This document shows positions 4,251 through 56,600 of a stretch of 64,000 nt of DNA, one piece after another. Both the position numbers and the translations under genes were made by a program. Position 1 is the stretch's first letter; the number at the start of each line of letters is the position of its first letter. Under the pieces are notes generated by a model, which saw nothing but the letters and a program-made list of their open reading frames with translations, did no database searches and was not told the origin of the DNA. The stretch is from Macrostomum lignano (Eukaryota): NCBI GenBank assembly GCA_002269645.1, contig NIVC01002490.1, positions 38,855-102,854 of the forward strand, read 5' to 3'.

Positions 4251-7200
4251 TCAGAACACGCGAATCCGGTCGCGCCTCACGTAGGCGAGGTCGTCATCCA
4301 TAGTGAGGATGATGTTGAAGCCGAGGAACATGGCCACCGCGGACAGGAAGTGCCAGATGTCGTGCACATCGTAGAAGCCGGCCAGCACGCAGGCCTGGTT
4401 GCGGATGCGGGAGCCGCTGGCGCTGTCCTCCCAGTTGGTGGGGCTCTGCAGGAAGAAGTAGCCAGCCCCAGCCCAGGCGGCGATGTCCAGCAGGGTGAAG
4501 GCCACCGGGGTGAAGGCGAGCCGCTCGCCGTTGCGCAGCTTCATGATGATGTAGAACACAAAGTACATCATCATGTTGACCATGAGGATGCTCAGCATGA
4601 AGGTGCTGAAATCTTCTGGCCGCTTGAATGCGCCGTAGAGGCCGATGGACCAGTTGATGGAGTTGGCGAAGATCAGCAGCACCAGGCGGTCCCGCCGCTG
4701 CGGCCGGAAGCAGGACAGCCCGTCTGTGCGGACCAGCAGGTACAGCCGCTTCAGCCGGCCGACGTTCATCTTCCAGCGGCCAACATAGTACACCTCCAGG
4801 GTGAGCAGGATGCTGGTCACGATGACCAGGATGCAGAACAGGGTGTAGAATGTGGTGCTCTCTTTGCTGTAGAAGACACCAAGCAGGCCGGTGAAGATGA
4901 TGATGGCCAGGGCCATGTAGGCCATGTGGGCCGAGGCGTTCACGTCTGGGTGTCTGGGGGTTGGGGAGAGGGTATGACAGCTGATATTATGACAGCTTGC
5001 GATTGTACATTTAAAGTCTCACCCCTACATAGTACATTTGTTAAACTCTCACCCCTGTGTAGTTTGATGTTTGATGTCTCAAAATCTCACACCTGCATAG
5101 TAGATGTCTCAAAACCTCACCCCCAACACAGTAATGTTTCATTTCAAAATCTTAGCCCTACATAGTTAGATGTCTCAAAATCTCACCCCTGCATAGTAGA
5201 CGACTTAAAACCTCACTTATACGTAGTTAGATGTCTCAAAATCTCACCCTTCGTAGCTAGATGTCTCAAAATCTCACCCTACGTAGTAGATGTGTCAAAA
5301 TCTCACTCATAAATATTAGATGTTTCAAAATCTCAACCCCTGTAGTAGATGTGTCAAAATCTCACCCTTAAATAGTAGATGTCTCAAAATCTCAACCCCT
5401 GTAGTAGATGTGTCAAAATCTCACCCTTAAATAGTAGATGTCTCAAAATCTCAACCCCTGTAGTAGATGTGTCAAAATCTCACCCTTAAATAGTAGATGT
5501 CTCAAAATCTCAACCCCTGTAGTAGATGTCTCAAAATCTCAACCCCTGTAGTTAGATGTCTCAAAATTTCACCCCTACATAGTGGATGTCTCAAAATCTC
5601 ACCCATCGTAGCTAGATGTCTTGAAATCTCATCCTTCGTAGCTAGATGTCTTGAAATCTCATCCTTCGTAGCTAGATGTGTCAAAATCTCACCCTTAAAT
5701 AGTAGATGTATCAAAATCTCACCCTTAAATAGTAGATGTCTTAAAATCTCACCCTTAAATAGTAGATGTCTCAAAATCTCACCCTTAAATAGTAGATGTC
5801 TTAAAATCTCACCCTTAAATAGTAGATGTCTCAAAATCTCACCCTTAAATAGTAGATGTCTCAAAATCTCACCCCACGTAGTTAGATGTCTCAAAATCTC
5901 ACCCTACATAGTACCTCTACCCCTACATAGCCAGCGCCGCGCTCACCTAGTCTGGTAGATCTTCAGCATGCAGAGTCCGGACAGCATGTACATAAACGCC
6001 GTATCGAACTGGAAGTTATTGTAGCTGGGACAGATATGATAGCAGCCGGAGAGTACACCCTCCATGATCAGGGCGATGCCGATGGCATAGTACAGTCCGT
6101 AGTGATGCGGAATGCCGTACTGGCTGGCCCGGGGGTCGCGGCGGACCAGATTCTGGTGCAGCAAGTCCCGGCGCCAGCACAGCAGAAGAAACAGCAGGCC
6201 CAATAGCACGTAGCTGATGTTGGAGAAGACATTGTTGAACGAGGAGATGACGCCCAGAGTGTGGGCGCAATCGAAGTTGTAATAGCACATGTCCTCGTCT
6301 CCGCTAGTGTTCAACACTTTCTGGTAGGTCAGCACCAGCTGGATCACCGGCAAGCAGTAGAAGATCGATATGATGATTAAATACCAATAGTACAGCTTGT
6401 ACTTTTTGCGCAGCCTGCTGGGCGGCTTTCTGGACAAATCCTGCACCGTCATGTCTTTGCGCAGGCGAAAAATCTCCTTCTCCTGGTTGGCCTCCGCCAT
6501 CAGGTCGACAAATCCGCCGTCTTCGCCGACTCCCGTGCCGACGCCGACGGTGGCAGAGGCGGAAGCGGCCGAGGTCGAAGCCAGCGCATCCGATGCGTTC
6601 GTCGACGCCGAAGTTGTCGCCGAATTGGCCGAGGCCGGAGGCTCAACGACGCTCATCTGGCTGGGCAGGGTGCCTCTCTGCATGGACAAAGACGACATTG
6701 CCGCGGTAGAGAAGGTGGCAGTTGTCGACATTGTCGCCGTTCTCACCGTTGGAGTCTCCCCCACGGCGAGATAATTACGCGGCGATGAATTTGACGCCTC
6801 GTTAAAATCTGTCGAGTTATCACCAACGTCGGCTGCATCGCCGCGTTGACGAAGCGGCGACTCTGGAGTGTCCTCGGTTGGCGCGCTGTTGCCGTCGTAG
6901 TTGTTAGCGGCGCCGGCGCGGCTGCGAGCCAGCAAGCGCCTGGTCTCGTAGGTGTGATGAAGCAGCGCTATGATAAAGGCGGCAGCGTAGAACAATAGAA
7001 AGAAGAATATTGTGCCAAACACTGGCAGAAAGTATTCGTTGATGCCAAGCGAAGGCAGTACGGTGATGTTCAACTGTTTGGTGCGCCGGTACAGTTCCCG
7101 ACCGTGCTCTCCGGGATCTGGCGGCACCAGCTGGGCGGGAATATTTGGCCGGCAGTTGGCGTCAGTGGGGTACACGACCAGCACCACGTAGAATGCTGTG

Positions 7201-8093
7201 GCCGAAGCCAGCGCCGGGTCGCTGGTGGTAACACTCAGACTGGCCTTCTTAGATGCCGTCTGCCTGATGCCAGTGAATTCTACATTCCTAGCCAGATCGT
7301 ACACTGGGCAGTTGACCGCCTGTACAGACACCCGCATGCACAGCATGTCGTCTGACACCATTCTAACCTGCACAGACGAGACATTGGGAGGAAACTCAAA
7401 CTTGTAATACTTCGGCTGCGATGGAGACACGTGGGCCGATCTGATACCGTGACTAGCGCCCAGATACAACTGGAAATTCGGCACTATTGAAGCGTTCAAA
7501 GAGAATGCCGTCATGTTGGGATTCTGAGTTGTCACCTCAACAAAGATGGTGTGAACCCGGCCAGTGACAGAGCCACCCAGCGGCAGCGTGGGACAAAGAG
7601 TCCGCGACACTATATAGTAGGGGAACTCTTTCTCCTCGCTGGAGTAAAACAGCGGCAATCGCCATGACACAATCTCCCGCTGTTGCCTAGCAACTACAAG
7701 CACGGGATGGTCTGAACTGGCCGATTCGCTCACGATTGTCAACCGAACAGCTTGAGTAACATCGACAATCTCTGTATAGTTGAATCTGAACACCAATTCG
7801 TTAGTGCTGGACACGCTGTAGTTGTAGGTGAGGTTGAACTCTCCAGCTACAATGTGCCGCTGCGGCTGCTGCTCGCCACCATCGCCAACAGCCAGCGGAG
7901 GAAGTGACAAAATCAGCAGACTAAAGATCAATAGCGACAGGTGCTCGTACGGCAACTGGCGCTGTGAGCTACGGGCAGGCAGCGCCATAGACAGGAGGCT
8001 GAACGGCCCCCCCACAGTCCCGTAATCTGCTTTGTCTCTGCTAAGCCGTGAGCTGAGTAGCAGGCGTCGCAGAAATGATGGCCGGATGAGCAT
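4251..8093 (-). CDS. SIDT: SID-1/SIDT (ChUP) family multipass membrane protein, paralogue A; exons 8093-5947 and 4953-4251
   Basis: Family motifs include [96 protein letters not shown] and [12 protein letters not shown]. The intron 5946-4954 (ACTAG|GTGAGC ... CCCCAG|ACAC) restores the conserved [13 protein letters not shown]. Product is 949 aa from ATG 8093; an alternative ATG at 7988 precedes a signal-peptide-like stretch. Confidence 0.95.
4990..5920. repeat. ~29-30-bp minisatellite (AGTAGATGTCTCAAAATCTCACCCTTAAAT) filling the SIDT-A intron
   Basis: Tandem units occupy nearly the whole 993-bp intron. Confidence 0.95.
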
Positions 8094-8759
8094 TGCTGGA
8101 TCGGCTGTAGGACACCCCCATCCCCTCCTGAGCAACAGGCGAATCAGCTCAAGGCTCAGTGCCGATCTCCGCTAAATCCCCGGAGCCATTTCCGCAGCAA
8201 GGCTTAGAGAAGGGGGGAGGGGAGAGCATGTCAGAGAGGAAAAATCAGACGGGTAAGCCTAGTTAAGCCTAGTTTTCATCTGCAAGACAGGCACTGCTAG
8301 GCTGGCCCTGTTGCATTTGATTGAGAGGCCGGAATGTGTAGTAGCATAACAGCATGACAAAAAGCACACTCGAGAAACTGACAAGCGATCATCAGTGAGA
8401 CGGCTCAGTCAAGGAGAAAGTACTCCGCTTAGCTCCGCCCATCTTCCTCTCCATCTCCCATCTATTTATAGCAGTCCTCGAGCTGGCCTCAACTGCACTC
8501 AGCGCTGCCGCATGCAGGCTGTTGTTTAAAGTGTGACTACAGGCAGAATGAGGGAAACCTCTGTAAGATTTGGCCTACAGCTGCTGTATCAAAAACTCGT
8601 ATTGACACGGTTTTCGCGTCCGGGGATTCGCTTTTAAAAAGTAGCTTTCTAAGAATTTGGCAACGAACACGGTTTGGACCACTACTGCAGGCTTCTTGCT
8701 GCCCGCTACTTTGCTTATACCGGGGTTTGTGAGTCCAGTCTCAGCTTGTCTAGTGCAGT

Positions 8760-13236: not shown

Positions 13237-15139
13237 TCAGTCATCAGCATAGCTGTCATCAACAAAGGCCAGGCAGGTCATGGGCTTGGCTGAGGTGCTG
13301 CCGTGCCCGGCAGACTTAGTGGAGCCGCGGTACTCCCGCCTGGGCTTGGCGCCGTCGTCAATGGAGTAGAGCCGGGCGCAGCCGTCGGAGGACACGGTGA
13401 CAACGAACTCGGAGTCGGCCGAGAAGGCGCAATCCCAAACCCATTTGTCGGCTCCCGATAGTTCAACCTTAAGCGGGTCGGGCAGCGGTCATTGGTTGGG
13501 TCTGCCTGCGGTAGGCCTAACTCAATTTTTGCTTTTCTAAGCTTTAAATCTGCATAGCGGAGAGTGCTGTGGTGCCGCTGTGGGACAGGGAATTGCTTCT
13601 GTGGGATTCTATCCCATTAGCTACTGGCTTATATGGCTTTTCATACAGTGCGGCGGCTATCGGAGGGACTGGTATTAATGGGGAGTAATAGAAAGAGGAG
13701 AGAATAAAAATAAGGAAAGAGAAGGGGAGATAAAAGAAATTGGAGAGAGTGGGAGAAATGAAGAGGGAATTCTCTCCCCCCTCTCGAGAGAGGGAGCGAG
13801 AGGGGGGAGAGAGGGAGCAAGAGGGGGGAGAGAGGGAGGAGAGGGAGAGGGGGTTGGAGAGGAAGAAGAGACGAGGAGGAGAAATGGAGAGGGAGAAAGA
13901 GGGAATAGAGAGAGGGAGGAGTGGGAGAGGGGGGAGAGTGGGAGGGAGAGATGGAGAGGGAGAGAGAGGGGGAGAAGGAGAGAAGGAGAGTGAAAGAGAC
14001 GGGGGAGAGTGGGAGGGGAGAGAGGGAGAGATGGAGAGGGAGAGAGAGGGAGAGGGAGAGACGGGAGGGAGAGATGGAGATAGAGGGAGGGACTCTGGAG
14101 AGAGAGGAGGGCAAGTGTCTCGGGTAAAGAAAAGGTAAAAGGTAAGAAACCGAAGCCCAGCAAGACCCAACAGAGAAGAAAGGGAGAAGGGAGAAGGGAG
14201 AAGAGAAGAAGGGGAGAGAGCTCAACTCAAGCGCACCTGTTTCTGATAGTCGGACGTTTTCCAAACGTTGCACAGGCGGTCGGAGCCGCAGGTGGCCAGC
14301 AGGGTGCTGTCAGGTGAGAAGGCGCACCTCAGGCCGTAGCCAGAGTGGGCAGCGATCCGAGCCTTGGGGACGGCCTGGCTGCCCGACACGTTGGTGACGG
14401 CGCTGGCCAGCGACCACATGAAGCAGCTGCCGGTGTTGGCCAGAGCGGCCAGGTGCGTGCCGGCCTGATTGACAGCCACGGACTGAATCCGGGCGTCGAG
14501 GTCGGGCACCAGCGAGCAGCTCTGGTTGCTGCGCAGATCCCAGATGTGCACCGCGCCGGTGGCGTCGCCGACAAATAACTCGATTTGATTGGGGTGCAGG
14601 CACACCGACGTGATGGGGCCGTTCACCTGCCCAGGTGAAAGTGCGATAGCAGACTAATATCAACACTAAAGCGAACACTGAGGGAACGGGCCAACAGACA
14701 GACTAGTTCAGACAGTCATGGACACCAAGACAGTCAGTAGGGTGCACTGAAAGAGAAAGACGGACAAAAAGACACGTATTGACAGACAGGTAGACACACA
14801 CGCACACGCTAAGATAGACAGACGAACACGTGAAGACAAAGAGACTAAAGTCTCGGTCTAAAGACACAGACAGACAGACAGACACACAGACAGACAGTCA
14901 GACAGACAGACAGACAGACAGACAGACAGGCAGACAGGCAGACAGACAGACAGACACAGAGACAGACAGACAGACAGACAGACAGGCAGGCAGGCAGACA
15001 GACAGACAGGCAGGCAGACAGGCAGATAGAAAGACAGATAGACAGCCAGACACACAGACAGTCAGGCAGACAAACAGACAGACACAGACAGTCAGGCAGA
15101 CACACAGACAGACACAGACAGTCAGGCAGACAAACAGAA

Positions 15140-15184
<45 letters not shown>

Positions 15185-15202
15185 GGCAGACAGACAGACA
15201 GG

Positions 15203-15252
<50 letters not shown>

Positions 15253-15683
15253 GCGGGCAGACATAGTGAATAAGACAGCATTAGCAGTGATGATTTGCAC
15301 GCCAACCCCACCTGGAACAGTCTGCTGCAGGGGTTGCCGCCCTGCCCGCCCCTGGCGTGTCGCAAGTCCCACACCCGGCAGACGCAGTCCTCGCCGCCGC
15401 TGTACATCCACTTGCCGTGGCCGTCGAAGCCAACAGCCGTGATGTTCTTCTGCATGTCGAAGGACAGCGAAGGCGAGGTGACCAACGTGTCGCCGATGTC
15501 GTACAGGCGGATGTGCTCGTAGCCGGCGGCTGCCAAGGTGCGCCTGTCTGGGGAAATGCTGAGCGCATTCACCTGGGAGCCGGCGTGCTCAAGCTGCCGG
15601 ATAAGCTGAGCACTGTAGGCCTGCCACAGCTTGATCACATTCTCGTAGCCGGCCGTGGCCAAAATGATCGGCTCCTCAAACAT
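13237..15683 (-). CDS. MLST8: Target of rapamycin complex subunit LST8 (WD40); exons 15683-15312, 14626-14237, 13467-13237
   Basis: [22 protein letters not shown]...[27 protein letters not shown]...[29 protein letters not shown]...LFQ|[31 protein letters not shown]...[20 protein letters not shown]...QKQ|[34 protein letters not shown]...[11 protein letters not shown]. Both introns are GT-AG, phase 0. Product is 330 aa, typical for LST8. Exon 3 is not in the ORF track in this frame. Confidence 0.95.
13680..14220. repeat. Homopurine (GA-rich) low-complexity tract in mLST8 intron 2
   Basis: About 540 bp of almost only G/A on the plus strand (pyrimidine-rich in the pre-mRNA). Confidence 0.9.
14668..15265 (+). 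repeat. (GACA)n array with conserved head, in mLST8 intron 1
   Basis: The head AAAGCGAACACTG...GGGCCAACAGACAGACTAGTTCAG...CACCAAGACAGTCAGTAGGGTGCACTGA matches 3667-3760 and is followed by (GACA)n. Confidence 0.9.
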
Positions 15684-15724
15684 TAGCTGGGGCTGCAGGC
15701 AGGAACGGTACATTGGGATGTTAT

Positions 15725-28314: not shown

Positions 28315-31010
<2,696 letters not shown>

Positions 31011-31137
31011 TCTCTCAGAGCACGGTTGTTTGCTTTGATTATATACACATTTATAATTGCAACTTAAAAGTTTGAATCGCGCTAAAACCATGCAGAAACC
31101 ACCTGCGGTTCTCGTCTCAACTTTGGGTGGATAGAAT

Positions 31138-36008: not shown

Positions 36009-39000
36009 ATGACTAACAACAAGCCTAAGCCATTCACCATTGGAGTCCTGCGTGAGACTATGGTGCCAAATGAAACTAGGACTCCATTGACTCCTAACCA
36101 ATGTGCCAAGATACTAGCTCAATATGGTGACAAAGTGGCCATTGTGGTTGAGAAATATCCATTTCGCTGCTATAGTGACAAGGAATATGAAGATCTTGGA
36201 ATAAAGCTAGTTGAGAAGGTAAGTATATACTTGTATATAGAGACCATATTTTTCTTTATTTGCTAAAATGTTGTATAGTATATAGTTGTATAGTAATTTC
36301 AGGCTATGGATGGAACTTGCTATTATATTATGACTTAATGCAGTGATTATATACTGGATAATTGTATGCAGTTAATTTTTCAGCTTTGAATCTGTACAGA
36401 TTTTATATTTTTCGGTTCAGTTCAGAAGTTTTTTTGTTGCAGAATATGTTCAATTTGCATCAAAAAAGTTTAAACTACAATTTTTATTACCTACTTGTTT
36501 AAGGTACTGTTAGTAGAACTAAAGGCATTTTTTCTATGATTTTATTCTTTCAAACAAAAATGTTACAAAATTTAAATATTAAAAAATCGCAGGCTGAAAA
36601 TGTAGATTTGCTACTGGGCGTCAAGGCGGCTTCCATTGAGTCGCTGAAGGACAACTCAACCTACGTGATGTTCTCGCACACAGCCAAGCGGCAGCCGCAA
36701 AATCGCACGCTGCTTAGAGCAATCCTAGCCAAAGGTATTCGCCTAATGGATTGGGAATTTATGCGTGACGAGAACAAAGTTCGCCTAATTGGTTTCGGCC
36801 GCTGGGCCGGCATAGTCGGGGCGCACAACACCATAGCGGCTTGGGGTAAAAAGACTGGCCGCTTTGATCTGTTCCGCCTGTGCAAAATCGCCGACTGGGA
36901 GGCGGCGCAGAGGCGCTACCGCGAGGAGCTGCCCATTGAACTGCTGCGCGGTGAGTATAGCGGCTCCTCTGATTTGAGTAGAGCTGTCTAATTATTACTG
37001 TTTTCGCTCTCTCGTCTCTTCCCCACCTTAGTCAGGGGGCTTTGATGCAAATCAAGGCAGTCGCCAGCCGACCTGCAGCCAGCCTGGACACCTGACGCCT
37101 GGGCACGCACACGGATATGTCCGCAGGTACACACACAAAGGTGTACAAACGTTAGACTGAGGAGTAGTGTTAAGCGCTAAAATTAGGCTTTAACGCACCA
37201 AAGGTTATGCTCTATGAGGAATTCCTGAGATGCCGAGGGTCATTAGGGGATTTCTTAGATATCAAAGGTAATAAAATGGAATTCCTTAGATTCCAAGGGT
37301 CATAGGGAGTTCCTTAGATGCCAAGGGTCATAAAGAGGATTCAATGAGATGCCAAGTTTCATAAAGGGAATTGCTGAGATTTTAAGGGTCATAGATGAAA
37401 TTCTTTAGATATTATGGGTCATAGAAGTAACTGCTGAAATGCCAATGGTCATAAAGAGAATTGCTGAGATGCCAAGGGTCATAAAGGGACTGCTGAGATG
37501 CCAAGGGTCATAGAGGGAATTGCTGAGATCTCAATGGTCATAAAGGGACTGCTGAGATGCCAAGGGTCATAGAGGGACTGCTGAGATGCCAAGGGTCATA
37601 GAGGGAATTGCTGAGATCTCAATGGTCATAAAGGGACTGCTGAGATGCCAAGGGTCATAGAGGGAATTGCTGAGATCTCAATGGTCATAAAGGGACTGCT
37701 GAGATGCCAAGGGTCATAAAGAGAATTGCTGAGATGCCAAGGGTCATAAAGGGACTGCTGAGATGCCAAGGGTCATAGAGGGAATTTCTGAGATGCCAAG
37801 GGTCATAGAGGGAATTGCTGAGATCTCAATGGTCATAAAGGGACTGCTGAGATGCCAAGGGTCATAGAGGGAATTGCTGAGATCTCAATGGTCATAAAGG
37901 GACTGCTGAGATGCCAAGGGTCATAAAGAGAATTGCTGAGATGCCAAGGGTCATAAAGGGACTGCTGAGATGCCAAGGGTCATAGAGGGACTGCTGAGAT
38001 GCCAAGGGTCATAGAGGGAATTGCTGAGATCTCAATGGTCATAAAGGGACTGCTGAGATGCCAAGGGTCATAGAGGGAATTGCTGAGATCTCAATGGTCA
38101 TAAAGGGACTGCTGAGATGCCAAGGGTCATAAAGAGAATTGCTGAGATGCCAAGGGTCATAAAGGGACTGCTGAGATGCCAAGGGTCATAGAGGGAATTT
38201 CTGAGATCTCAATGGTCATAAAGGGACTGCTGAGATGCCAAGGGTCATAGAGGGAATTGCTGAGATCTCAATGGTCATAAAGGGACTGCTGAGATGCCAA
38301 GGGTCATAAAGGGAATTGCTTAGACGCCAAGGGTCATAGGGGAATTGCTGAGATGCCAAGGGTCATAAAGGGAATTGCTTAGACGCCAAGGGTCATAGGG
38401 GAATTGCTGAGATGCCAAGGGTCATAGAGGAATTGCTGAGATGCCAAGGGTCATAGAGGGAATTGCTGTGATGCCAAGGGTCATAGAGGGAGTTGCTGAG
38501 ATGCTAACGGTCATAGAGGGAATTGCTAAGATTCAATGGTCATAAAGGGACTGCTGAGACGCCAAGGGTCATAGAGGGAGTTGCTGAGAATGCGGGGGGC
38601 AATTCAAAGTGGGAAAGCAGATATCTCATGCTTGAAAGTTGGATATCTGTGCTAGATAAAAAATTTTCTTATTGTTTTCTATTTGCAATCTTCATTTAGT
38701 GATTTTACTAAACAAACAATGATTTGCTTATCTAGCGCTTATCAACAACTGGGGGAAGAGCTAAGACTGCCAGTGTATTTTATATGATCGCTAATACTCG
38801 ACCTCGCCATTCCGCAGGCATGCGAGTTGTCCTCACCGGCAGCGGTCGGGTCGGCACCGGCTGCAGAGAGATTCTGGATTTGCTCGGCTTCGAAAAGATC
38901 TCGCCAGCCGATCTGCTGGCCCGCGACTGGTCATCGGCCGATCATCCGCCCGTGTACGCCCAGCTGCCCGCCGACCACCTGTTCCGCCTTGGCCCGGACA

Positions 39001-41297
39001 ACAGCTGGAGTCCCGACTACTATGCCAACCCCACCGGCTACCACAGCATCGCCTGGCCCTACATGGTCAAGGCCAACATTCTGATCAACGGCATGTACTG
39101 GGACAACCGCTGCGGCCCGTTGCTCACCATCGAGCAGATGTGCCAGCCGGAGATGGCCGTCCGACTGATTGGCGACATCACCTGCGACATCGCCCCGGTG
39201 GCCTCGCTGCCCTGCACTGTGCGGCCCACCGTTGTGAAGGATCCGGTGAGGAGTGTCAGAGTGTGGGATTGTTACTTCGAGTTTGAGATTTTATAAGACT
39301 CTTTTGGCCCATTAGTTTTGAGTCTGGATGTCGCAAATCCTCGCACCAAAAAATTCAAGAATCCCAATTCTGAGGTTTTAGAATTCCCTTTCCTTAGTTT
39401 AGAACACCATACCGTAGCTAAATTCCCTTCCATACCGTAGCTAATTCCCTTCCATACCGTAGCTAATTCCCTTCCATACCGTAGCTAATTCCCTTCTATA
39501 CCGTAGCTAAATTCCCTCCCATACCATAGTTAAAAATCTACCGTAGTTAGGAATCCCCATACCGTAGTTAACAATCCCCATACCGTAGTTAAGAATCCCC
39601 ATACCGTAGTTAGGAATCCCCATACCGTAGTTAAGAATCCCCATACCGTAGTTAACAATCTACGTTCAACCGTAGTTAGGATCACCATACCATAATTAAG
39701 GATCACCATACCATAGTTAAGGATCACCATACCATAATTAAGGATCACCATACCATAGTTAAGGATCACCATACCATGGTTAAGGATCACCATACCATAA
39801 TTAAGGATCACCATACCATAGTTAAGGATCACCATACCATAATTAAGGATCACCATACCATAGTTAAGGATCACCATACCATGGTTAAGGATCACCATAC
39901 CATAGTTAAGGATCACCATACCATAGTTAAGGATCACCATACCATAGTTAAGGATCATTATACCATAGTTAAGGATCATCATACCATGGTTAAGGATCAT
40001 CATACCATAGTTAAGGATCATCATACCATGGTTAAGGATCATCATACCATGGTTAAGGATCATCATACCATGGTTAAGGATCATCATACCATAGTTAAGG
40101 ATCACCATACCATAGTTAAGGATCATCATACCATAGTTAAGGATCACCATACCATGGTTAAGGATCACCATACCATAGTTAAGGATCACCATACCATGGT
40201 TAAGGATCATCATACCATAGTTAAGGATCATCATACCATGGTTAAGGATCACCATACCATAGTTAAGGATCACCATACCATAGTTAAGGATCATCATACC
40301 ATAGTTAAGGATCACCATACCATGGTTAAGGATCATCATACCATAGTTAAGGATCATCATACCATGGTTAAGGATCATCATACCATAGTTAAGGATCATC
40401 ATACCATAGTTAAGGATCACCATACCATAGTTAAGGATCATCATAACATGGTTAAGGATCACCCTACCCAATTTAAACAGCATACCGTAGCGAAGAAAAT
40501 CCATTGTAAAATTTGATATTTTCGAATCCTCGCCATCTTCTGTCCATAGTAGCAGCAAGAAATTTAACCCGCAGTAGATGGTCTGAGCTACCCAATTCTC
40601 AAACAAAAGACTCGCCCTCTCAAACTGCTGTGAGCAAGTGAATAGCATTTATTGTCGAGTAACTTCGCAGTCCTGAGCAGAAAGGCGGGCTGTTTAGAGT
40701 TTAGAAATGGGGCGACATTGAGTGAACTCAAGCAGTGCTCTCCTTGCTTGTTATTGTCCACGCTCGCCCTGCGTGTTGCGAGCCTGCACTGCCCAGGTGC
40801 TTGGAGTTCGGCTCGCCATCTTGCTTGCTAGCGAGGTCAACCTGCCTGCCCGATCTAATTCAAGCCGTTCCAGATGGAGGTATTAAGAATATGAGCGCAG
40901 TTTCCAGCGCTTTGCACCCACCCATACCGTAGCTTGAGGATCTCAAATTGAATGTGGAATCCTGAGTAAGAATGGCTGCCCGACTTCTCCCAAACCCAAG
41001 GTGCTGACCTTCGACCCGGAGCTCGGTCGCGAGCTGCAGCCAGGCGAGCCGCGTTCAGCCCTTGCCGTTGACGTCATGGCGGTGGACAACCTGCCTAGCG
41101 AGCTGCCTCGGGATGCCTCCCGCGACTTTGGCGACATGATTCTCAACAAGGTGCTGCCGGAGTTCCTCCAGGCGGCTGCTGCTGATGGCAATCAGCGGGT
41201 CAGCCCGGTGCTGGAGGGCGCCACCATCACGGAAGCCGGCAAGCTGACAAGCGTGTTCGCCTACCTGAGCGACTTTGTCAACGCGGCCGAGGACTGA
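36009..41297 (+). CDS. Stand-alone saccharopine dehydrogenase / lysine-ketoglutarate reductase-like enzyme (AlaDh/PNT fold), copy 1; exons 36009-36218, 36593-36950, 38818-39245, 41001-41297
   Basis: IGVLRE...[43 protein letters not shown], Rossmann VVLTGSGRVGTG, INGMYWD, IGDITCDI, VMAVDNLPSELPRDASRDFG, ATITEAGKLT..FAYL.DFV. All introns are GT-AG with matching phases (0,1,0); 430 aa; AATAAA at 41349. Confidence 0.92.
37205..38590. repeat. ~30-31-bp minisatellite (TGCTGAGATGCCAAGGGTCATAGAGGGAAT) in intron 2 of SDH-like copy 1
   Basis: Directly visible, with a decayed 5' edge. Confidence 0.96.
39410..40500. repeat. 21-bp minisatellite (CCATAGTTAAGGATCACCATA) with CCATACCGTAG-type edge variants, in intron 3 of SDH-like copy 1
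   Basis: Directly visible; ORFs 39530..40648 and 39776..40516 are repeat translations. Confidence 0.96.
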
Positions 41298-43012
41298 TTG
41301 ACAACTGGAACTGACCAAGACTTTTAATAACTTTTAATTACTTTTAGTAATAAATTAGTAAAGGTGACGGTGTTTTTCTCATGTTTCTATCACAATTAAT
41401 TATATTTCTCTTGCCTTATCATTTCCACATAGCAATGGGAGTAAAAAAATAAAACAGAAGTTTTACTAAACAACTAATAAAATTCAATTTTTTTCGTCCT
41501 GTTTCTTAGAAACTCCTGTTGCTATGCGGATCGCGCGTTTTCCGGGTTACGGACGTAATAAAAAATCGGTATTGGATGTTTCGTACTATGTTATTATTTT
41601 CTATAGTAATCGAATTGTTATATTGATGAATAAAACATATTTTTTTAATTTTTTAAGTTTTTTGCTACTCCGTGCTAAAGCTTTGTTGTTCTAATCGTAA
41701 CATAAAAATTTAACCTTAGCGTCTTTTTCCCAGCGCTTGCGCTTTTTGTTGTAACCCCGCCGCCCAAGCACTTTATTTTTACGATATTTTTTTGCGATCT
41801 GCATATTGCGTAATTATGGTAGTCAGCTTTTTCGTATTATTATATTTACCAAAACGTGGCCATTTTTCTATCTGCTGATTCACCTACAGTACTTGGCCTT
41901 TTGCTCCTTTACAGTCAGAATATCTCATTGCGCGCTGGCGCCGTTAAATCAGAGACCTGATAAGCTCGTTGAACTATTTCCTCCATCTTTTTGCAAACGC
42001 GGCAAAGATAAAACTTTTATCTAGTTCTTATTAATTGTTATCCTTTTTACACTCTGCGATGACCAAAGTAATATTTTTTTCGGAACTAACATTGCCGTTT
42101 TGAACAGCTTTGTGAATAAAAAACCTCTGCTTGATGTTCCAGCTACTTAGGATCTTCAGGCATAAAATTTTAAAGAATTATCCTTCGTCTTTTTTTGAGT
42201 ATAATATTTGACCTTCATGTAGCAGGTCTCTGAAACATGTTTTGTTGTCTGCAGTCTGCCTCGTGTAACGTAAAGTAGTACATATAATTTTACAAACTGT
42301 CTTAAATCCAACTAGAACTTCAGATATTAAAGCCTTTGGCCATTGGCCGAATTAAATGAACTTGACTGATTAACTGAATTCTTCGAAAATGTAAGCCTAT
42401 TTGAACAGTAAAATAGCCTATAGAATATAGAATATATATATAGAATAAAATGCCTTTTTAACCTCATTAACACCAAAGCCATATTTAATGGATTTAACAC
42501 ATGCCTTAGTTATATAATGCAATTTTCAGACAATTTTTTAGAGCTCACACTTTTGAAAAAATTCCAGATCGTTTAAGCAATATAAAGACAGTGTTGTTTT
42601 GTTTTACTTTACAGTAGAATTACGTATTATATAAAAAATTAAACCTCTAGTTTTCTTCGAACTATCATTACCTTTGTCTGGCTCAACTCAGCATGTAAGA
42701 TTTTAGCACTGCGTCAGCCCTTTCTGAAAACTGTGCCTTAAAATCGTGGTATTATTTTGTTACAATCTTAAAAACCTTTCTTTGATATAGAGAATACTAA
42801 CTCTAGAGGGCTTTTTTATTTACTTGTATGCATTTTATTGACGCAAACAAGGAAACTGGGAAAAACAAGTGGACGTTTTGACTAAAATGCCAGAGACAGA
42901 GGAAAGTAAACTTAGATGTTTTTTCTAAGAAAGAACGTTTTGGATAACACAATTCCATAGGCTTAGTCATAAAGGTGGCCTTTGCTAGGCCTAAAGAAAA
43001 ATTGGTATACTT

Positions 43013-43200
43013 CAGTAGCGCAACCAGAAATTTTTTGAGGGGGCGGATTCTGGAGGGTAAAGTCTTGGGAGGCCCGGAGGGGTGGCTCTGTTTTTGGCAA
43101 AAATTTGCTTGGTCTTCCTTTGATTTTTTTGGGTCTCCACCTAAGGGGGTGACATTTCTAAATTTGCTTCCAAATATGAAAAAAAGCAACAAACCAAAGC
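43013..43200 (+). mobile_element. Possible end of a non-autonomous hAT-like element
   Basis: CAGTAGCGCAACCAGAAATTTTTTGAGGGGGC resembles the common CAG(T/G)GGCG..CCAG..TTTT..GGGGG termini of such elements; I found no partner end. Confidence 0.35.
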
Positions 43201-44918
43201 AATTACAAATGTAAAAGTAATAATATTTCTTTTAAAATAAGAAAGTAAATTAAAAAATAAGAATAGGCTTACAAAATTTTATGGACCTATTTTTTTTACA
43301 ATTGTCAGTTTTTGCAAAAACATATTTAAAAGTTTATATCAAAATCAAGTAAAGTTTGTAAAATTTGGCCTTGAAACCCTTGAGGCATTAAAACTAAATT
43401 CATAAAAACATTCTTTAGGTAATCATTATTTAAGTATAATTATTACTTTTTTTCAAAATGCAAATGCATATAGGCTTAAAGTAAAATTATTGAATTGCAC
43501 AAATATAATATCAGTTATTAGTAATTTATTAGTAATAAATTAAAATTAGTTAGATAAGATATACAAAAATTAATTTCAATTCAAACTTATTTACTCTTTA
43601 CTAAATTTGGTTTTGATAGGTACTAGATAGATATAGTATAAGGCATAAGCCTAGGACAGATATAATCTTGAGAGTCAATTCATATGTATCACTAATTAGA
43701 TGAGGAGGCAATTGTAATTAAATGTGTCAAGTTACTCCCACCACTTTTTGCTTACATTTGGAAACACATTTTGATATTGAAATTTGGATTCAAAATTTTT
43801 TGTGCATTAGTATTTGGTTTTGAAAACTTGTAAAAATCCATATTCAGTCCATTACTAATTCTTACTAAGATCTTCTGTAAGAGTAATGGCATACTTATCA
43901 GTTGGTTTCCAAGATGCTTCCTTTAGCATTCTTTGATAATGGCAAATGCTGGGCAGCTTTCCCTTTTGGCTTCATTCATCTTTATTTAAGTCCCCACTAT
44001 CCTAACCACAGTATTCATATGGTGTCAAAGTCCTAATGTGTGTTGAGAAAATAATGAGTTAACTAATCTAAATTTAGACATGGCCCCACATTAGACATGT
44101 TAAAAAAACTAAGACAAACTAATCTAACTTGAGTTACATTTAATAGTAAGACAGAAGTGGTCAGTATATAGTCAATAAGCAAAGCCTACAACATTTTTTT
44201 TTATATTAAAATTGTGGGGCAGCAGGGGGGTTAAGGCATGCAAAGAGGGGGGGTAGGTTAGCTATGCAAAATGAATGGAGGGTTGGAGTGAGAACAAGAG
44301 GCTAAAGAGGGAGGATTAATCAGAGTGAATAGAGGGTAAGGAAGTCTAGACTGAATTGCACAAGAGAGTAAATAATGAAGAGTGCTAAGTGAATTGAAGG
44401 AGGGCAGAAGTTGCTATACTCTACTATTTGGGGCTTCTGCAATTCACATCCATGCAGGCCAACTCCCAAGATACTTTGGACTATAGATTCTAGATGATTA
44501 GAATGTTATGGCTGCTGGACACCCTATGTATGTGTATGAGTGTGTCTATGTACAGTATATGTGTGCTTGTATATGCTCAGGAGTCAGAAGAATATGCAGA
44601 CTGGTTGTTGGATAGTTGTGGAAAGAGTGCAAATATTTATACTTTTCATCCTAATTGTCCAAAATCACGGGATCCAAATGAACATCTCTATTCGAAACTT
44701 TGTTAATTGTAAAAATATTTGATCCTAGCCATCTTTAAACATATTAGATAAATATTATCTATTATATATTAATAAATATTATCTATTATATATTATTATA
44801 AATATTATGATAAATATTATCATATATCAGATAAATATTATCTTTGCTTGTATTGCTTGACTGACTTGCTTATCTAATTGGCATTCCCACTCCCACAGCA
44901 ACTAACTAATTACACAGA

Positions 44919-46735
44919 ATGTCCAGCACAAACACTGAAGCTAACAATTCTGGTGCTCCAGTCACCATTGGCATCATCCGCGAGACTCTGATTCCTGATG
45001 AGACCCGGGTTCCGCTGACTCCGGCCAACTGTGAGGAGATCCTCTCCCTGTACGGCTCCAGAGTCACTATCCTTGTTGAAAGCTGCCCATTTCGCTGCTA
45101 CAGCGACAAAGAATATTTGGCCGCTGGGGCGAAAATTGTTGAGAAAGCAGTTGGCGCCGACTTCCTGCTCGGAGTGAAGCCGCCTGCTGTGGACACCCTG
45201 CAGCCCGGGGCCACCTACGCCCTGTTCTCGCACACTATTAAGAAGCAGCCTCACAATAGGGATCTGCTGAGAGCTGTCCTGGACAAAGGCATCCGCCTCA
45301 TGGACTGGGAGTGCATGCGCGACGCCCTAGGCATCCGACTGGTAGGATTCGGTCGCTGGGCGGGCATTGTGGGCGCGCACAACACCATGATGGCCTGGGG
45401 CCGGCGCTCTGGCTGCTGCCAGCTGTTCCGGCTGAGGGAGGCGCAGGACTGGGAGGCGGCCAAAAAGCGCTACGCTGATGAGATCAAGCCGGAGATGATG
45501 AGCGGTTTGTGTCTTTGGTTCCTTGAAAACCCAAAAGTTGTCACACGAGACGATTTTCGATTATTTTAATTCAAACGGTTTCTTATTTGGCACCCAGGTA
45601 CGAGGTATTGCATTTCCAAGAAGTTTTTGTCCGGATGAGCCTTTATTTTAGGTCGATTTATTTGCTCCTTATCTTGAAGACATTCCACGTTTAAGCGTCA
45701 ATAATGGGATGTTTCTGCATGTGAAAAGTCGCTAGGTTAAATATTGAATTCTTAAAAAAGACCAGCAATGCTTCCAATATCTGACTTGCCGCGGGAAATT
45801 ATGTTGAACAGATTATTTAGCTAGGGAAAAACTTGAAAATGCCCCTAATACATAAAAAATTGTTGAGACGCCAAGGCTCGCAGGGAGAACTCATGAGATT
45901 AGCAGCAATGCTGGGATGCCAAGGGTCAGTTGGAAGTTGTTGATAGGCGAAGCATCAAAGGTAGGTTAAAAGTTAAGCCATGGCTCAAAGGGAGGCTTTG
46001 AACATCGTTTTCCTAAAGGAACTAACAATTTAGTGACAAAATTGTAAAAGATTGTATAAGGTCGACAGATATATAAGTAGTTAAGTAAAAAAAATTACTG
46101 CTTTTTTGCCTCCCCAACGGGGGGCGCAGGTTGCTAGTCCACTATACTAAAAATCACTTGTCCGTAGGTATCTTCTTTGCACAGTGAAAATCGAAAATAA
46201 GAATCACGCGCAAAGCTCGAAAAGCAGTTCTAAAAGGACTTTCCCGGGACAGCATTCCTTCTGTCACTTTTTGAGCACTTGAGAGCAAGCATCAACTACT
46301 TGAGTCCAGCTTGACGGATCCTCGTGAACTTCAACAAGACAGAATCAAGAAAATAAGAAATTTTCGCGTTTTCAAAAAATACGAACTAAAGCAGTTGCTA
46401 TGGCTCCTGCTTGTACATAGAAAAGTCATTTAATTTTGCTCGTAACGCCAGATCTTCGCGTGGTTGTCACTGGCGACGGTCGGGTTGGCAACGGAGCCTG
46501 CGAACTGCTTAACCTGCTGGGCCTGGAGCGCCTGGCGCCGCAGGACTTTCTGGCCCGCGAGTGGCAGCCGGGGCACGCGGGCACGTATACCCAGCTGCCT
46601 GCGGACTGGCTGTTCCGCAAGGTCTGTTTGCTCACAGGTAGCGGCTGCGGATTCCGCCAGTCTCTAGAGCTGATTCCATGCCTCCTGCTAATTCACCTTT
46701 ATTAGCTTACTGATTCAGTTTAGGGATTTCTACCC

Positions 46736-46792
<57 letters not shown>

Positions 46793-46805
46793 TTGTCTGT
46801 CTGTC

Positions 46806-46860
<55 letters not shown>

Positions 46861-47823
46861 TTGTCTGTCTGTCTTTGTCTGTCTGTCTGTCTGTCTGCCT
46901 TCGTGTATGTGTGCCTGTCTGTCTTTCTGTCTTACTCTATGCCTGTGTCTGTCTGTCTTAGTGTATGTCTGTCTGCCTTTGCCTGTCTGTTTCTATGTCT
47001 GTCTGTCTGTAAGTATATATATCTCTCTCTATCTTCTATCTATCCATAATTCTGTCTGTCTACAAAAGCCTCGCATTAAATCAACATATTCTTGTAAATC
47101 CGGACATTTAGCCAGCGCACAATTGGCTGATTGCGTGACTACTCAAATCGTCCTGGATATTGTTTCTCTGAGTCACTGTCAACCCCGGCTCCGGGCTATA
47201 GCGGAGGAAAACTGGAAACAATCGTAAAAATGCACGAATTTCAGTACATCGAATCTGCCCTGCACCCATCCGCCAAGGGCCCCGAGGCCGGCTGGAGCGT
47301 GGAGTTTTTCTCCGACCCAACCGGCTACCACAGCGTCATTTGGCCGTTCGCCACCAGGGCCAACGTGCTGATCAACGGCATCTTTTGGGACCACCGCTGC
47401 GCCCCGCTGCTCACGCTTGAGGACATGCGCCGGCCCGACTTCGGCATCCAACTTGTCGGCGACATCACCTGCGACATCGCCCCGGTGGCCTCGCTGCCGT
47501 CCACTTTACGAGCCACCACCGTGGACGACCCCATCTTCACCTTCGACCCCAGCAGCGGTTGCGAGCTGCCCTCCGACAATCGAAATATCGACAAAGCCTA
47601 CGTCGACGTGATGTCGGTTGACAATCTGCCGATCGAACTGCCGCGCGATTCGTCCAGCACCTTCGGCGAGCTCCTCCTGCGCCGGGTGGTGCCCGAGATG
47701 CTGCTGCCGCACGTGGCCCCCGGCGGCTGCAGCCGCGTGCTTCAAGATGCCACCATCGCCGAGAACGGCAAGCTGACCTCCGCCTATGCCTATCTGCAGG
47801 ACTATGCCGACGGCGAATGCTGA
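44919..47823 (+). CDS. Stand-alone saccharopine dehydrogenase / lysine-ketoglutarate reductase-like enzyme, copy 2; exons 44919-45504, 46452-46621, 47278-47823
   Basis: [149 protein letters not shown]. Splicing gives WLFRK|GPEAGWS, colinear with copy 1 HLFRLGPDNSWS; 433 aa. Confidence 0.92.
46735..47010. repeat. (TGTC)n microsatellite in intron 2 of SDH-like copy 2
   Basis: Directly visible. Confidence 0.95.
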
Positions 47824-53665: not shown

Positions 53666-56600
53666 TCAGAAAACCTCCAGCCTATAGCGCGGCACATCGG
53701 CCACATCATCGTCCAGGGTGAGCAGGAACAGGAAGCTGAAGAAGATGGCCGCGGAGCTGGCAAAGTGCCATAGATCGTGCGCGTCAAAGAAGCCCAGAGC
53801 CGCGCAGGGCCGGTTGCGCGCCGAGCGGGACTGCGCGGGCGACAGCTTCCAGTCTGTCGGCGACAGCGAGAACTGCCACAGCGCCACGCCCCAGGCCGCC
53901 AGCGCCACCGTCAGGCAGAAAGTCGACGCCGACGCTGCGGCGATGGTTGATCCCACCGAGCGGTGCACCTCGCAACGCGGAGTTCGAGCCCAGGACTGCA
54001 GCTTCTTAGCCAGGTAGTAGGCCAAGTAGCAGGCGGTGTTGGTGAGCAGGCAGGCCAGCAGCAGCAGGCTGTAGGAGGCCGACATCACCGGGGCGGAGCC
54101 TCGACCAGCAAAGTAGGCGGCGGCGAAGACGGCTGCCGACTCGGAGAGCCAGATGCAGCCGTAGGCGACTTCAGCTGGGCTGACGCTGCCGCGGCAGCTG
54201 CGCAGCCGGGCGCACCGGACGGCCACAACGGCAACTGGCGGCGTCAGCAGCAGCAGGCCGGTGGCGGCGAAGACCGCGGCTCGAATCGCGGGCTCAGAAT
54301 TGACGGACGAGCCGAGCGAGTTCAGCAGCAGCAGGCCGGCGATGGCCAAGCAGCCCCAGTGCGCCGGCGGCCGCAGTCCGGGACGCCGTTTCGCCAGCAC
54401 CAGCAGCGCCAGCAGCGACGCCAGCACCAGCATGAAGGCGGTGTCGAATTGGAAGCTGGCGGCGCTGGGGCACAGGTGGTAGCCAGCCGACAGCAAGCCC
54501 TCAACGCACATGCACAGTCCGGAGGCAAAGTGCAGGCCGTGGCTGTGCGGTACGCCGAACTTGCCGCCGCTGTCAACCGCTAATTGTCGCCGTCTCGCTA
54601 ACCGGCGCGCCTTCATTGAGCGCCGGTGCACCAGAGTGCAAATTAGAAAAGTGACACCAAGAATTGCGTAGCCAATGTTGGAGAACACGCTGTTGGAGGC
54701 GTAGATCACGTGGCCCAGCACCGTGACAGGCAGCAGGCAGGCGAAGTTGTAGTAGCAGAGGTCCTGGTCGCCGGACTCGTGCAGCAGCCGTTGGCTGGAC
54801 ATCACCAGCTGCAGAGCCGGCAGGCAGAAGAAGACCGCTGCCACCGCGGCGTGGACGCAGTACCGAGTCTGCCGACGGCCGTCTGCCGCGTCCACCGCGT
54901 CGCTGATGACGTCTTCGAGGCTGACAACGCCATCCGGCAGTGGCCGACAGGTGCAGAGCTGGCTCTGGTCGACTGTGTCCACTGGCGTGTCGCGTACTGG
55001 TGATCCGAGTTCGTAGTTGGCTTCTGGTGATGTTCTCTTGAAGGTATGATTTTTATAGTGCAGGCATGCATTTGAATTCAAGCTGGGGTGAGATTTCAGG
55101 GCTGAGAGTGAGCTTGCAGAGCTGGGAGTGAGATTGCAGAGCTGAGAGTGAGATTGTAGAGCTGGGAGTGAGTTTGCAGAGCTGAGAGTGAGATTGTAGA
55201 GCTGGGAGTGAGATTGCAGAGCTGAGAGTGAGATTGTAGAGCTGGGAGTGAGATTGCAGAGCTGAGAGTGAGATTGTAGAGCTGGGAGTGAGATTGCAGA
55301 GCTGAGAGTGAGATTGTAGAGCTGGGAGTGAGATTGCAGAGCTGAGAGTGAGATTGTAGAGCTGGGAGTGAGATTGCAGAGATGAGAGTGAGATTGCAGA
55401 GCTGAGAGTGAGATTGCAGAGCTGAGAGTGAGATTGCAGAGCTGAGAGTGAGATTGTAGAGCTGAGAGTGAGATTGCAGAGCTGAGAGTGAGATTGCAGA
55501 GCTGAGAGTGAGATTGCAGAGCTGAGAGTGAGATTGCAGAGATGAGAGTGAGATTGCAGAGCTGGGAGTGAGATTGCAGAGCTGAGAGTGAGATTGCATC
55601 TCTGAGTGAGATTGCAGAGATGAGAGTGAGATTGCAGAGCTGAGAGTGAGATTGCAGAGCTGAGAGTGAGATTGCAGAGCTGAGAGTGAGATTGTAGAGC
55701 TGGGAGCGAGATTGCAGAGCTGAGAGTGAGATTGTAGAGCTGGGAGCGAGATTGCAGATCTGAGAGTGAGATTGTAGAGTTGGGAGTGAGATCGCAGAGC
55801 TGAGAGTGAGATTGCAGATCTGGGAGTGAGATTGCAGAGCTGGGAGTGATATTGCAGATCTAAGAGTGAGATTGCAGATCTGGGAGTGATATTGCAGATC
55901 TAAGAGTGAGATTGCAGATCTGAGAGTGAGATTGCAGAGCTGGGAGTGATATTGCAGATCTAAGAGTGAGATTGCAGATCTGGGAGTGATATTGCAGATC
56001 TAAGAGTGAGATTGCAGATCTGAGAGTGAGATTGCAAAGCTGGGAGTGAGATAATTGCAGATCTGGGAGTGAGATTGCAGATCTAAGAGTGAGATTGCAG
56101 ATCTGGGAGTGAGATTGCAGATCTGGGAGTGAGATTGCAGATCTGGGAGTGAGATTGCAGATCTGGGAGTGAGATTGCAGATCTGGGAGTGAGATTGCAG
56201 ATCTGGGAGTGAGATTGCAGATCTGGGAGTGAGATTGCAGATCTGAGAGTGAGATTGCAAAGCTGGGAGTGAGATTGCAGATCTGGGAGTGAGATTGCAG
56301 ATCTAAGAGTGAGATTGCAGATCTGGGAGTGAGATTGCAGATCTGGGAGTGAGATTGCAGATCTGGGAGTGAGATTGCAGAGCTGGGAGTGATATTGCAG
56401 ATCTAAGAGTGAGATTGCAGATCTGGGAGTGATATTGCAGATCTGGGAGTGAGATTGCAGATCTGAGAGTGAGATTGCAAAGCTGGGAGTGAGATTGCAG
56501 ATCTGGGAGTGAGATTGCAGATCTGGGAGTGAGATTGCAGATCTGGGAGTGAGATTGCAGATCTGGGAGTGAGATTGTAGAGCTGGGAGCGAGATTGCAG

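Follow-up and report, generated by a model that had tools for sequence, protein, structure and literature searches.

Tandem, intron-containing genes of bacterial saccharopine dehydrogenase type in Macrostomum lignano, a flatworm: probable acquisition from Bacteroidota

The stretch of Macrostomum lignano DNA analysed here (64 kb in all, hereafter the window) carries, on its plus strand from 36009 to 47823, two multi-exon genes in tandem whose products of 430 aa and 433 aa are 57% identical to each other and whose five introns are all of GT-AG type. The spliced models match, letter for letter, the annotated M. lignano proteins PAA57439.1 (P0002) and PAA57440.1 (P0330) of assembly Mlig_3_7. This confirms an earlier note, made from the DNA letters, which had described two single-module AlaDH/PNT-fold genes with spliceosomal introns and whose coordinates prove to run exactly from the ATG of gene 1 to the stop of gene 2. 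The motifs that it quoted are likewise present (LGVK, FSHT, TGxGRVGxG, DITCDIAP, VDNLPxELPRD and, at the C-terminus, ATIxExGKLT..YL.D).

Gene 1 (Mlig019856.g3, PAA57439.1; plus strand) has four exons: exon 1 (36009..36218) runs from the ATG to codon 70 and ends at a phase-0 donor, GTAAGT; exon 2 (36593..36950) encodes K81 (in LGVK), H99 (in FSHT) and R134 and is followed by a phase-1 intron; exon 3 (38818..39245) contains the Rossmann motif; and exon 4 (41001..41297) encodes VDNLPSELPRDAS and extends to a TGA stop, past which an AATAAA is found at 41349. Gene 2 (Mlig010543.g1, PAA57440.1; plus strand) has three, the first (44919..45504) encoding R30, K87, H105 and R140 and ending at a phase-1 donor, the second (46452..46621) containing the Rossmann sequence TGDGRVGNG and the third (47278..47823) reaching a TGA stop. 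An alternative in-frame acceptor for this last exon at 47245 would lengthen the protein by 11 aa; we rejected it, since the annotated 433-aa product and the alignments with gene 1 and with bacterial proteins all fit the acceptor at 47278. Intron 2 of gene 1 and intron 1 of gene 2 lie at the same position and in the same phase (phase 1). In both genes, in-frame stops are found 4-5 codons upstream of the ATG, so the first exon probably encodes no presequence; in both proteins the first strand begins after only 9-15 residues, and the N-terminus of the gene 2 product is devoid of Arg and Lys.

The neighbourhood of the pair is that of an animal genome. Upstream, on the minus strand, are a SID-1 family dsRNA channel gene with two large exons (4251..8135; PF13965, E 1e-117 and 7e-71) and a gene for a WD40-repeat protein, LST8-like by sequence reading (14222..15713), an intron of which contains a (CTGT)n-type repeat; downstream, also on the minus strand, is the C-terminal exon of a second SID-1 family member (53666..55081; PF13965, E 8e-80). 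Host-type repeats extend into the introns of the pair itself, as had been noted earlier: repeat analysis identified a 59-bp minisatellite of about 23 copies in intron 2 of gene 1 (37217..38589) and a 21-bp minisatellite of about 44 copies in its intron 3 (39539..40468), and intron 2 of gene 2 contains a (CTGT)n microsatellite (46735..47010) of a type that recurs across the window. At the paralogous locus L089, intron 3 of gene 1 reaches about 15.5 kb owing to related arrays. Codon usage is also host-like, with RSCU correlations of 0.87-0.90 to the flanking host genes and a GC3 of 0.72-0.78.

Bacteria and diatoms are present in M. lignano cultures and the proteins are of bacterial type, so that contamination or chimeric assembly had to be considered. 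Against this, the tandem pair occurs on three contigs (103, 354 and 702 kb long) that differ from one another by real substitutions, the introns, three for gene 1 and two for gene 2, are all GT-AG and host repeats lie in them, host genes lie on both sides, and the RNA-seq-guided annotation yields the same spliced products. The probability of an artefact is therefore practically negligible: introns (one of them common to both paralogues), host microsatellites, host codon usage, the SID-1 and WD40 flanks and the recurrence of the pair on three long contigs together exclude contamination, and the linkage to animal genes that the earlier note had described holds on each of those contigs. The genes thus show the physical integration usually sought in cases of horizontal gene transfer (HGT).

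Copies of the locus are 98-100% identical in exons and 83-99% identical in introns, and comparison between them gave 12 synonymous and 5 non-synonymous differences (omega 0.13, P = 7e-5). In two loci neither the reading frames nor the splice sites are disrupted; the two genes are intact and subject to purifying selection. The third copy (L090, on NIVC01000227) has a frameshift; as this amounts to a single base missing from a C4 run in a PacBio assembly, we did not take it as evidence of a pseudogene. A UniRef variant, P0001, is distinguished from the window protein by S195R and matches the L089 copy. Exact look-up in the protein collection found no encoding contig for P0001 and returned the NCBI genome contig alone for P0002, and neither paralogue lists a Logan source there. 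The M. lignano annotation was guided by RNA-seq (PMC5730564), and its products are exactly those of our models, which supports the transcription of both genes, if only indirectly.

Using Pfam, AlaDh_PNT_N (PF05222) was the only domain recognised (E 1e-18 to 6e-20), and NCBIfam gave weak, sub-threshold pntA matches and nothing else. The fold predicted by AlphaFold (AF2; pLDDT 90.9) associates an N-terminal AlaDh_PNT substrate domain with a Rossmann domain, the two-domain arrangement of the Lys1/LKR family. Foldseek placed the LOR/LKR domain of human AASS first (TM 0.80), then Lys1 (TM 0.63-0.73), ahead of alanine dehydrogenase, and sequence matches to the PDB follow the same order (AASS LKR 259 bits, Lys1 120 bits). 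The AASS LKR (LOR) domain (PDB 8DDA/8E8U; TM 0.78-0.80) shares with the worm proteins the catalytic Lys/His and arginine columns and the motifs FSHTIK, GxGxV and DNLP..LP. By contrast, its identity to them is only 25-31%, it has three insertions that they do not have, and it belongs to a mitochondrial protein fused to a C-terminal glutamate-forming SDH, whereas the worm proteins are stand-alone and phylogenetically remote from it. Fungal Lys1 (NAD+, L-lysine-forming; PDB 2Q99/3UH1) is a stand-alone single module like the worm proteins, but is about 22% identical to them (120 bits with a profile), has FAHCYK in place of FSHTIK and is biosynthetic, acting in the alpha-aminoadipate pathway. No glutamate-forming SDH domain was found in the two proteins with Pfam or in the 64-kb window by tblastn with four SDH halves, and in both genes the stop follows the LKR-like module, as the earlier note had it.

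Alignment to Lys1 and AASS verified the catalytic Lys, the His and the Rossmann motif picked out in that note. The columns of Lys1 K77 and H96, which we take to be the acid-base pair, are K81/H99 in gene 1 and K87/H105 in gene 2; those of Lys1 R18, R131, K99, E122 and D319, the two arginines being presumably carboxylate-binding, are R24, R134, K102, E125 and D361 in gene 1 and R30, R140, K108, E131 and D367 in gene 2. All seven columns are kept in both paralogues and are invariant in the family alignment, so that every catalytic or substrate-binding column common to yeast Lys1 and human AASS LKR is retained. In the worm proteins the columns of Lys1 K13 and E78 contain I/L and P/A; these two columns are not conserved in AASS either.

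Substrate and cofactor are assigned from AASS-LKR and Lys1, homologues with 22-31% identity, and on this basis we lean, by a small degree, towards the worm enzymes being specific for lysine and 2-oxoglutarate. It is possible, if rather unlikely, that the transfer is real but that the enzyme, rather than being an LKR, uses a different pair of amino acid and 2-oxo acid; it would then be an opine-type dehydrogenase or one for some other amino acid, and might serve, for instance, as a sink for NAD(P)H under anaerobic conditions or in the osmolyte metabolism of an intertidal animal. The divergence at the K13 and E78 columns is in keeping with such an activity, as is the bacterial subfamily to which the proteins are related: in the literature searched we found no characterised enzyme of this ~400-aa subfamily and no reported function, its members have been annotated under different names (alanine dehydrogenase, saccharopine dehydrogenase, NAD(P)-dependent oxidoreductase), and an SDH partner gene is not conserved, a glutamate-forming SDH gene adjoining in 1 of 80 bacterial loci. 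This one locus (L056) nevertheless does pair the two genes, the carboxylate-binding and acid-base residues of Lys1/AASS are all invariant, and lysine/saccharopine enzymes are the best matches by structure and by sequence, far ahead of alanine dehydrogenase.

After the two paralogues themselves, the best matches are ~400-aa proteins of Bacteroidota (Chitinophagales, Saprospiraceae), with 40-48% identity and 300-386 bits. About 30 of the best 120 matches listed have a source name, and every one of these, the two M. lignano proteins apart, is bacterial (41-48% identity, 355-386 bits); among the best 150 representatives about 30 likewise have one, and for the others a bacterial origin is partly deduced from where they sit in the tree and from what surrounds them on their contigs. 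When 1.84 billion representatives were searched exhaustively with HMMER, the top non-self score was 354 bits, and the bifunctional eukaryotic AASS-type proteins of 880-1076 aa reached only 158-175 bits. The nearest relatives are thus stand-alone Bacteroidota proteins and not AASS or Lys1, as the earlier note had suggested from family motifs.

At least 597 bacterial species genomes contain a relative, and the best 80 are nearly all from Bacteroidota. The closest matches are intronless genes in ordinary bacterial neighbourhoods (four Pfam-annotated contexts), and no conserved operon partner was found in those four contexts or in 80 genome loci. Stand-alone ~400-aa proteins of Bacteroidota and Cyanobacteria (Chitinophagales MGC6420240.1, Lewinellaceae P0026, Pleurocapsales P0100) are 40-48% identical to the worm pair over their full length and have in common with it the single module, the indel pattern and the family-invariant residues. 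By contrast, the worm genes contain spliceosomal introns, follow the codon usage of the host and are tandemly duplicated, and their products have 9-15 additional N-terminal residues and three small lineage-specific insertions near 236-239 (in both paralogues), 357-360 and 396-402.

A tree was built by neighbour-joining on corrected p-distances with 200 bootstraps, its deep nodes being weak. The worm pair is monophyletic in 200/200 bootstraps and in each of them falls within stand-alone, mostly bacterial sequences, at least 100 such sequences being nearer to it than any AASS-type sequence in 200/200 replicates. Its sister in 75% of bootstraps is the metagenomic protein P0003, which points only tentatively to the exact donor.

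Three eukaryotic histories can be set against a direct transfer. The two genes could descend vertically as diverged paralogues of the LKR part of animal AASS that have lost the SDH half, and the closest solved structures are indeed those of the human AASS LKR domain. This is barely conceivable: AASS-type sequences score 160-175 bits and bacterial ones 300-386 bits, the pair groups with them in 0/200 bootstraps, its indel pattern is that of the bacterial proteins, the three AASS-specific insertions being absent, and no other animal homologue of the bacterial subtype is found among the named and UniRef-sourced best matches, in a collection from which other Macrostomum transcriptomes are apparently absent. 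Being nested in the donor clade and, among the matches checked, absent from other animals is the pattern usually looked for in HGT.

Alternatively, a stand-alone gene could be ancient in eukaryotes, kept in M. lignano and Rhizamoeba and lost nearly everywhere else. A transcript of bacterial type (P0122, 327 bits) from Rhizamoeba saxonica, the only other eukaryotic homologue among matches with a checkable source, is what makes this worth considering. P0122, however, is nearest to Cytophagales (Algivirga, Limibacter, Sediminitomix; 51-55% identity) and 40% identical to the worm proteins, and no other eukaryote is found among its best 120 matches. Worm and amoeba sequences fall in different bacterial subclades and hence have independent origins, unless the amoeba transcriptome is contaminated, and we regard an ancient eukaryotic gene as extremely unlikely. 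A transfer by way of a second eukaryote (an alga or protist taken as prey, for example) that had itself acquired the gene from Bacteroidota is very unlikely; the worm feeds on diatoms and at least one protist transcriptome contains a bacterial-type copy, yet neither the searches nor the tree place any eukaryotic sequence between the worm pair and the bacteria.

Bacterium-to-animal transfer is thus very likely, and the main proposal of the earlier note, that a bacterial gene was acquired, intronised and duplicated, is supported by relatives, tree, indels and linkage alike. Taken as a whole, the acquisition, intronisation and duplication of a Bacteroidota-type gene for a lysine/saccharopine enzyme is likely to be the best explanation. 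The donor would most probably have been a Bacteroidota of the Chitinophagales/Saprospiraceae group and the recipient the nuclear genome of an ancestor of M. lignano, the transferred gene presumably encoding a stand-alone ~400-aa NAD(P)-dependent dehydrogenase of saccharopine dehydrogenase (L-lysine-forming)/LKR type. In the worm, the codon usage of the gene would have become that of the host, and one spliceosomal intron or more would have been gained, before a tandem duplication, after which each paralogue would have acquired further introns of its own. M. lignano has undergone a recent whole-genome duplication, by which the pair was probably copied again later.

Animals do not make lysine by the alpha-aminoadipate route and normally degrade it through the mitochondrial bifunctional AASS. 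Judging by sequence, each worm enzyme may catalyse the reversible conversion of L-lysine and 2-oxoglutarate into saccharopine with NAD(P)H, by means of the conserved Lys/His acid-base pair and the two carboxylate-binding arginines, and would probably be cytosolic because it appears to have no presequence. The worm would thereby gain a lysine-catabolic (or saccharopine-forming redox) step apart from AASS.

Few transfers of working metabolic genes from bacteria to animals are well documented, and these come mostly from rotifers, nematodes and arthropods. Among those documented are the beta-cyanoalanine synthase of mites and Lepidoptera (PMC4011162) and eleven HTGs of amphioxus (PMC13350694), which resemble the worm case in the event and in the evidence (bacterial nesting, introns, host linkage) but concern other enzyme families and other recipient phyla, the worm being a member of the Platyhelminthes (Macrostomorpha). 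In the literature searched we found no prior report of a saccharopine-dehydrogenase-type transfer into Macrostomum or flatworms; the present transfer is well supported and apparently unreported. It brings together the usual lines of evidence, namely phylogeny, introns, linkage, codon amelioration and purifying selection, and in addition has internal time markers, in the intron common to paralogues of 57% identity and in the copy number, probably raised by the recent genome duplication.

M. lignano is genetically tractable, RNAi and transgenesis both being available (PMC5730564). The role that such an enzyme, a lysine/saccharopine-type dehydrogenase of foreign origin, plays could therefore be tested directly in this animal, and this would offer a first functional handle on a large and apparently uncharacterised enzyme subfamily of Bacteroidota. 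One such role, which we consider doubtful, is that of a cytosolic, AASS-independent saccharopine- (or other opine-) forming dehydrogenase that would act as a redox/osmolyte valve in hypoxic intertidal sand of variable salinity, the two paralogues having diverged in substrate or cofactor; if true, this would be a metabolic capability otherwise absent from animals.

The ORFs and splice sites of the window, which comes from the Mlig_3_7 assembly (GCA_002269645.1; contig NIVC01002490.1, 102.8 kb), allowed us to confirm the two intron-bearing stand-alone genes proposed in the earlier note at 36009-47823 and give them exact coordinates. Gene 1 (+) has exons at 36009-36218, 36593-36950, 38818-39245 and 41001-41297 (430 aa; intron phases 0, 1, 0) and gene 2 (+) has exons at 44919-45504, 46452-46621 and 47278-47823 (433 aa; intron phases 1, 0). 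Every intron is GT-AG, in-frame stops lie 4-5 codons 5' of each ATG, and the spliced models match the annotated PAA57439.1 and PAA57440.1 at every residue. As the M. lignano annotation is a genome-guided transcriptome assembly from RNA-seq (PMC5730564), this agreement points indirectly to transcription of both genes and to splicing in line with the models. The two proteins are 57% identical (243/425 aligned residues) and their genes have one intron in common, at the same codon and in phase 1 (G190 in gene 1, D196 in gene 2), the remaining three each being private to one paralogue. Gene 2 exon 3 has an alternative in-frame acceptor at 47245, 33 nt upstream of 47278, use of which would lengthen the protein by 11 aa. 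Among the products annotated for other gene 2 copies (P0329, P0331, P0332) are truncated or frame-shifted forms of 242 and 225 aa, which read like intron-retention or mis-spliced isoforms.

Both proteins match only AlaDh_PNT_N in Pfam and no glutamate-forming SDH domain is found throughout the 64-kb window, which bears out the absence of this C-terminal domain. Against a family profile, human AASS-LKR scores 259 bits, yeast Lys1 120 bits, and alanine dehydrogenases and transhydrogenase dI less than 36 bits. The AlphaFold model (pLDDT 90.9, pTM 0.90) superposes best on human AASS LOR/LKR (TM 0.78-0.80), then on Lys1 (0.63-0.73) and then on AlaDH. Lys1 residues R18, K77, H96, K99, E122, R131 and D319, which have catalytic roles in that enzyme, correspond to R24, K81, H99, K102, E125, R134 and D361 in gene 1 and to R30, K87, H105, K108, E131, R140 and D367 in gene 2, and all seven columns are invariant across an 18-sequence family alignment. 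The worm genes therefore show the testable features of the saccharopine dehydrogenase (L-lysine-forming)/LKR family, and profile scores, fold and invariant columns make the reversible reaction lysine + 2-oxoglutarate + NAD(P)H <-> saccharopine their most likely putative chemistry; substrate, cofactor, in vivo direction and location are likewise inferred.

A word-indexed similarity search of 5.8 billion proteins returned, among the best 120 matches, the worm proteins themselves as the top two, followed by 118 at 41-48% identity (355-386 bits), of which those with a name are all bacterial (Saprospiraceae, Lewinellaceae, Chitinophagales, Phaeodactylibacter, and Pleurocapsales or Rivularia cyanobacteria). 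In an exhaustive HMMER search of 1.84 billion 50%-identity representatives, the best non-self match scored 354 bits and bifunctional proteins of 880-1076 aa scored 158-175 bits; the three bifunctional matches with a checkable source are eukaryotic AASS-type sequences (Pigoraptor, Choanoeca and an MMETSP transcript). An alien-index-style contrast, of the kind suggested in the earlier note, comes to roughly 136 from single-library HMMER E-values (ln(1e-41) - ln(8.6e-101)). At least 597 bacteria carry a relative in a scan of one genome per species, the best 80 being nearly all Bacteroidota, and the closest bacterial matches are intronless genes in ordinary bacterial neighbourhoods.

All 200 bootstrap replicates of a neighbour-joining tree (147 sequences, 397 columns) recover the worm pair as monophyletic, and its sister, in 75% of them, is the metagenomic protein P0003, the nearest named genome of which is a Chitinophagales MAG. 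In each replicate, the AASS-type sequence nearest to the pair is farther away than at least 100 non-bifunctional sequences, so that the grouping with metazoan AASS LKR domains, the result that would have spoken against a transfer, was not seen. Indels follow the bacterial pattern, without three AASS insertions. The worm proteins thus differ from metazoan AASS in the fused SDH domain, the insertions and the phylogenetic grouping, and they belong to a Bacteroidota-type stand-alone subfamily. The sole other eukaryotic sequence of this type among identifiable sources is P0122, a Rhizamoeba saxonica transcript product (EukProt EP01130; 490 aa, with an extra N-terminal stretch of ~84 aa). Since it is closest to Cytophagales (Algivirga, Limibacter and Sediminitomix, 51-55% identity) rather than to the worm proteins, and its best 120 matches include no other eukaryote, there is no sign of a eukaryotic clade, and P0122 is either an independent acquisition or culture contamination.

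No conserved neighbour of the bacterial LKR-like gene was found at 80 loci, and a glutamate-forming SDH gene lies beside it at one of the 80. At this locus, in a Marinilabiliaceae MAG (L056:1778-4419), the SDH gene follows immediately 3' and shares 30-37% identity with the C-terminal halves of eukaryotic AASS. P0181 (1052 aa), from a 106-member cluster of Schleiferiaceae/Tara Oceans contigs (marine Bacteroidota), has an LKR-like module at residues 2-397, and the cluster also contains proteins named M3 family metallopeptidase or peptidyl-dipeptidase Dcp; the fusion, if true, hints at a link of the module to peptide and amino-acid catabolism. We found no published characterisation of the bacterial subfamily in the searchable literature.

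Within the introns of the pair lie minisatellites with 59-bp and 21-bp units and a (CTGT)n array, and (CTGT)n-type arrays occur throughout the window, host-gene interiors included. Two genes of the SID-1 family (PF13965, with E-values as low as 1e-117) and one for a WD40 protein neighbour the pair. Exon GC3 of the pair (0.72 and 0.78) is inside the range of flanking host genes (0.68-0.92), and RSCU correlates with theirs (r = 0.87-0.90). Intron repeats, host neighbours, host codon usage, the presence of the pair on three contigs and its intact, constrained copy in L089 together exclude contamination or chimerism. The (CTGT)n/(GACA)n-type microsatellites are very long, up to ~2.8 kb (28264-31091, 3707-4215, 12892-13319, 14830-15273, 27213-27611 and 46735-47010), with one in a WD40-gene intron and another in gene 2, and on both strands they give rise to long ORFs that are spurious (SVCL... 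/ DRQT... repeats). The two SID-1 (dsRNA channel) genes are distinct and flank the region at 4251-8135 and 53666-57693, both (-); the second may have its N-terminal exon in ORF 56887-57693, which has no significant Pfam match. Upstream of the pair lie exons (24515-26459, -) that encode an annotated 365-aa protein without Pfam match, and the same gene precedes the pair in the paralogous locus L089.

The tandem pair is also annotated, under consecutive protein accessions, on two more contigs, of 354 and 702 kb. Identity to the 354-kb copy (L089) is 98-100% in exons and 83-99% in introns, and every splice site and both ORFs are intact there; of the coding differences, 12 are synonymous and 5 non-synonymous (omega 0.13, binomial P = 7e-5). 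The third intron of gene 1 measures 1.75 kb in the window (39246-41000) and ~15.5 kb in L089 (12077-27553), where arrays related to its minisatellites take up much of it; the intron is also expanded in the third copy, L090. In L090 (NIVC01000227.1), gene 1 exon 3 (13026-13452) lacks 1 bp of a CCCC run, at the equivalent of window position 39032, giving the truncated annotated product PAA87532.1; this may be a PacBio homopolymer/assembly error or mark a pseudogenised copy. The search collection seems to be without Macrostomum RNA-seq assemblies, as neither worm protein has a Logan source and exact look-up gave nothing for P0001 (the L089 variant, S195R) and only an NCBI genome contig for P0002 (gene 1). 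Neopolyploidy is known in M. lignano (PMC10733133), so the extra copies most simply come from that genome duplication and the tandem pair would be older than it.

The bacterial nearest relatives, the tree, the shared intron and the 57%-identical tandem pair support the acquisition, intronisation and duplication that had been proposed. A Bacteroidota donor would have passed the gene to the worm lineage, after which codon usage was probably ameliorated and at least the shared phase-1 intron gained. A tandem duplication would have followed, presumably old because dN is 0.35 and dS ~1.05, near saturation; further private introns may then have been gained or lost and minisatellites have invaded, before the entire pair was apparently duplicated along with the genome. 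The transfer seems, from how far the paralogues have diverged, to be much older than the species. We found no earlier report of this M. lignano transfer in the literature. The event is a bacterium-to-animal HGT of a metabolic enzyme, a category already known, and would represent a new category of biology only if the enzyme proves to give a new physiological capability; it provides a clean case of HGT in a model flatworm that is open to experiment.
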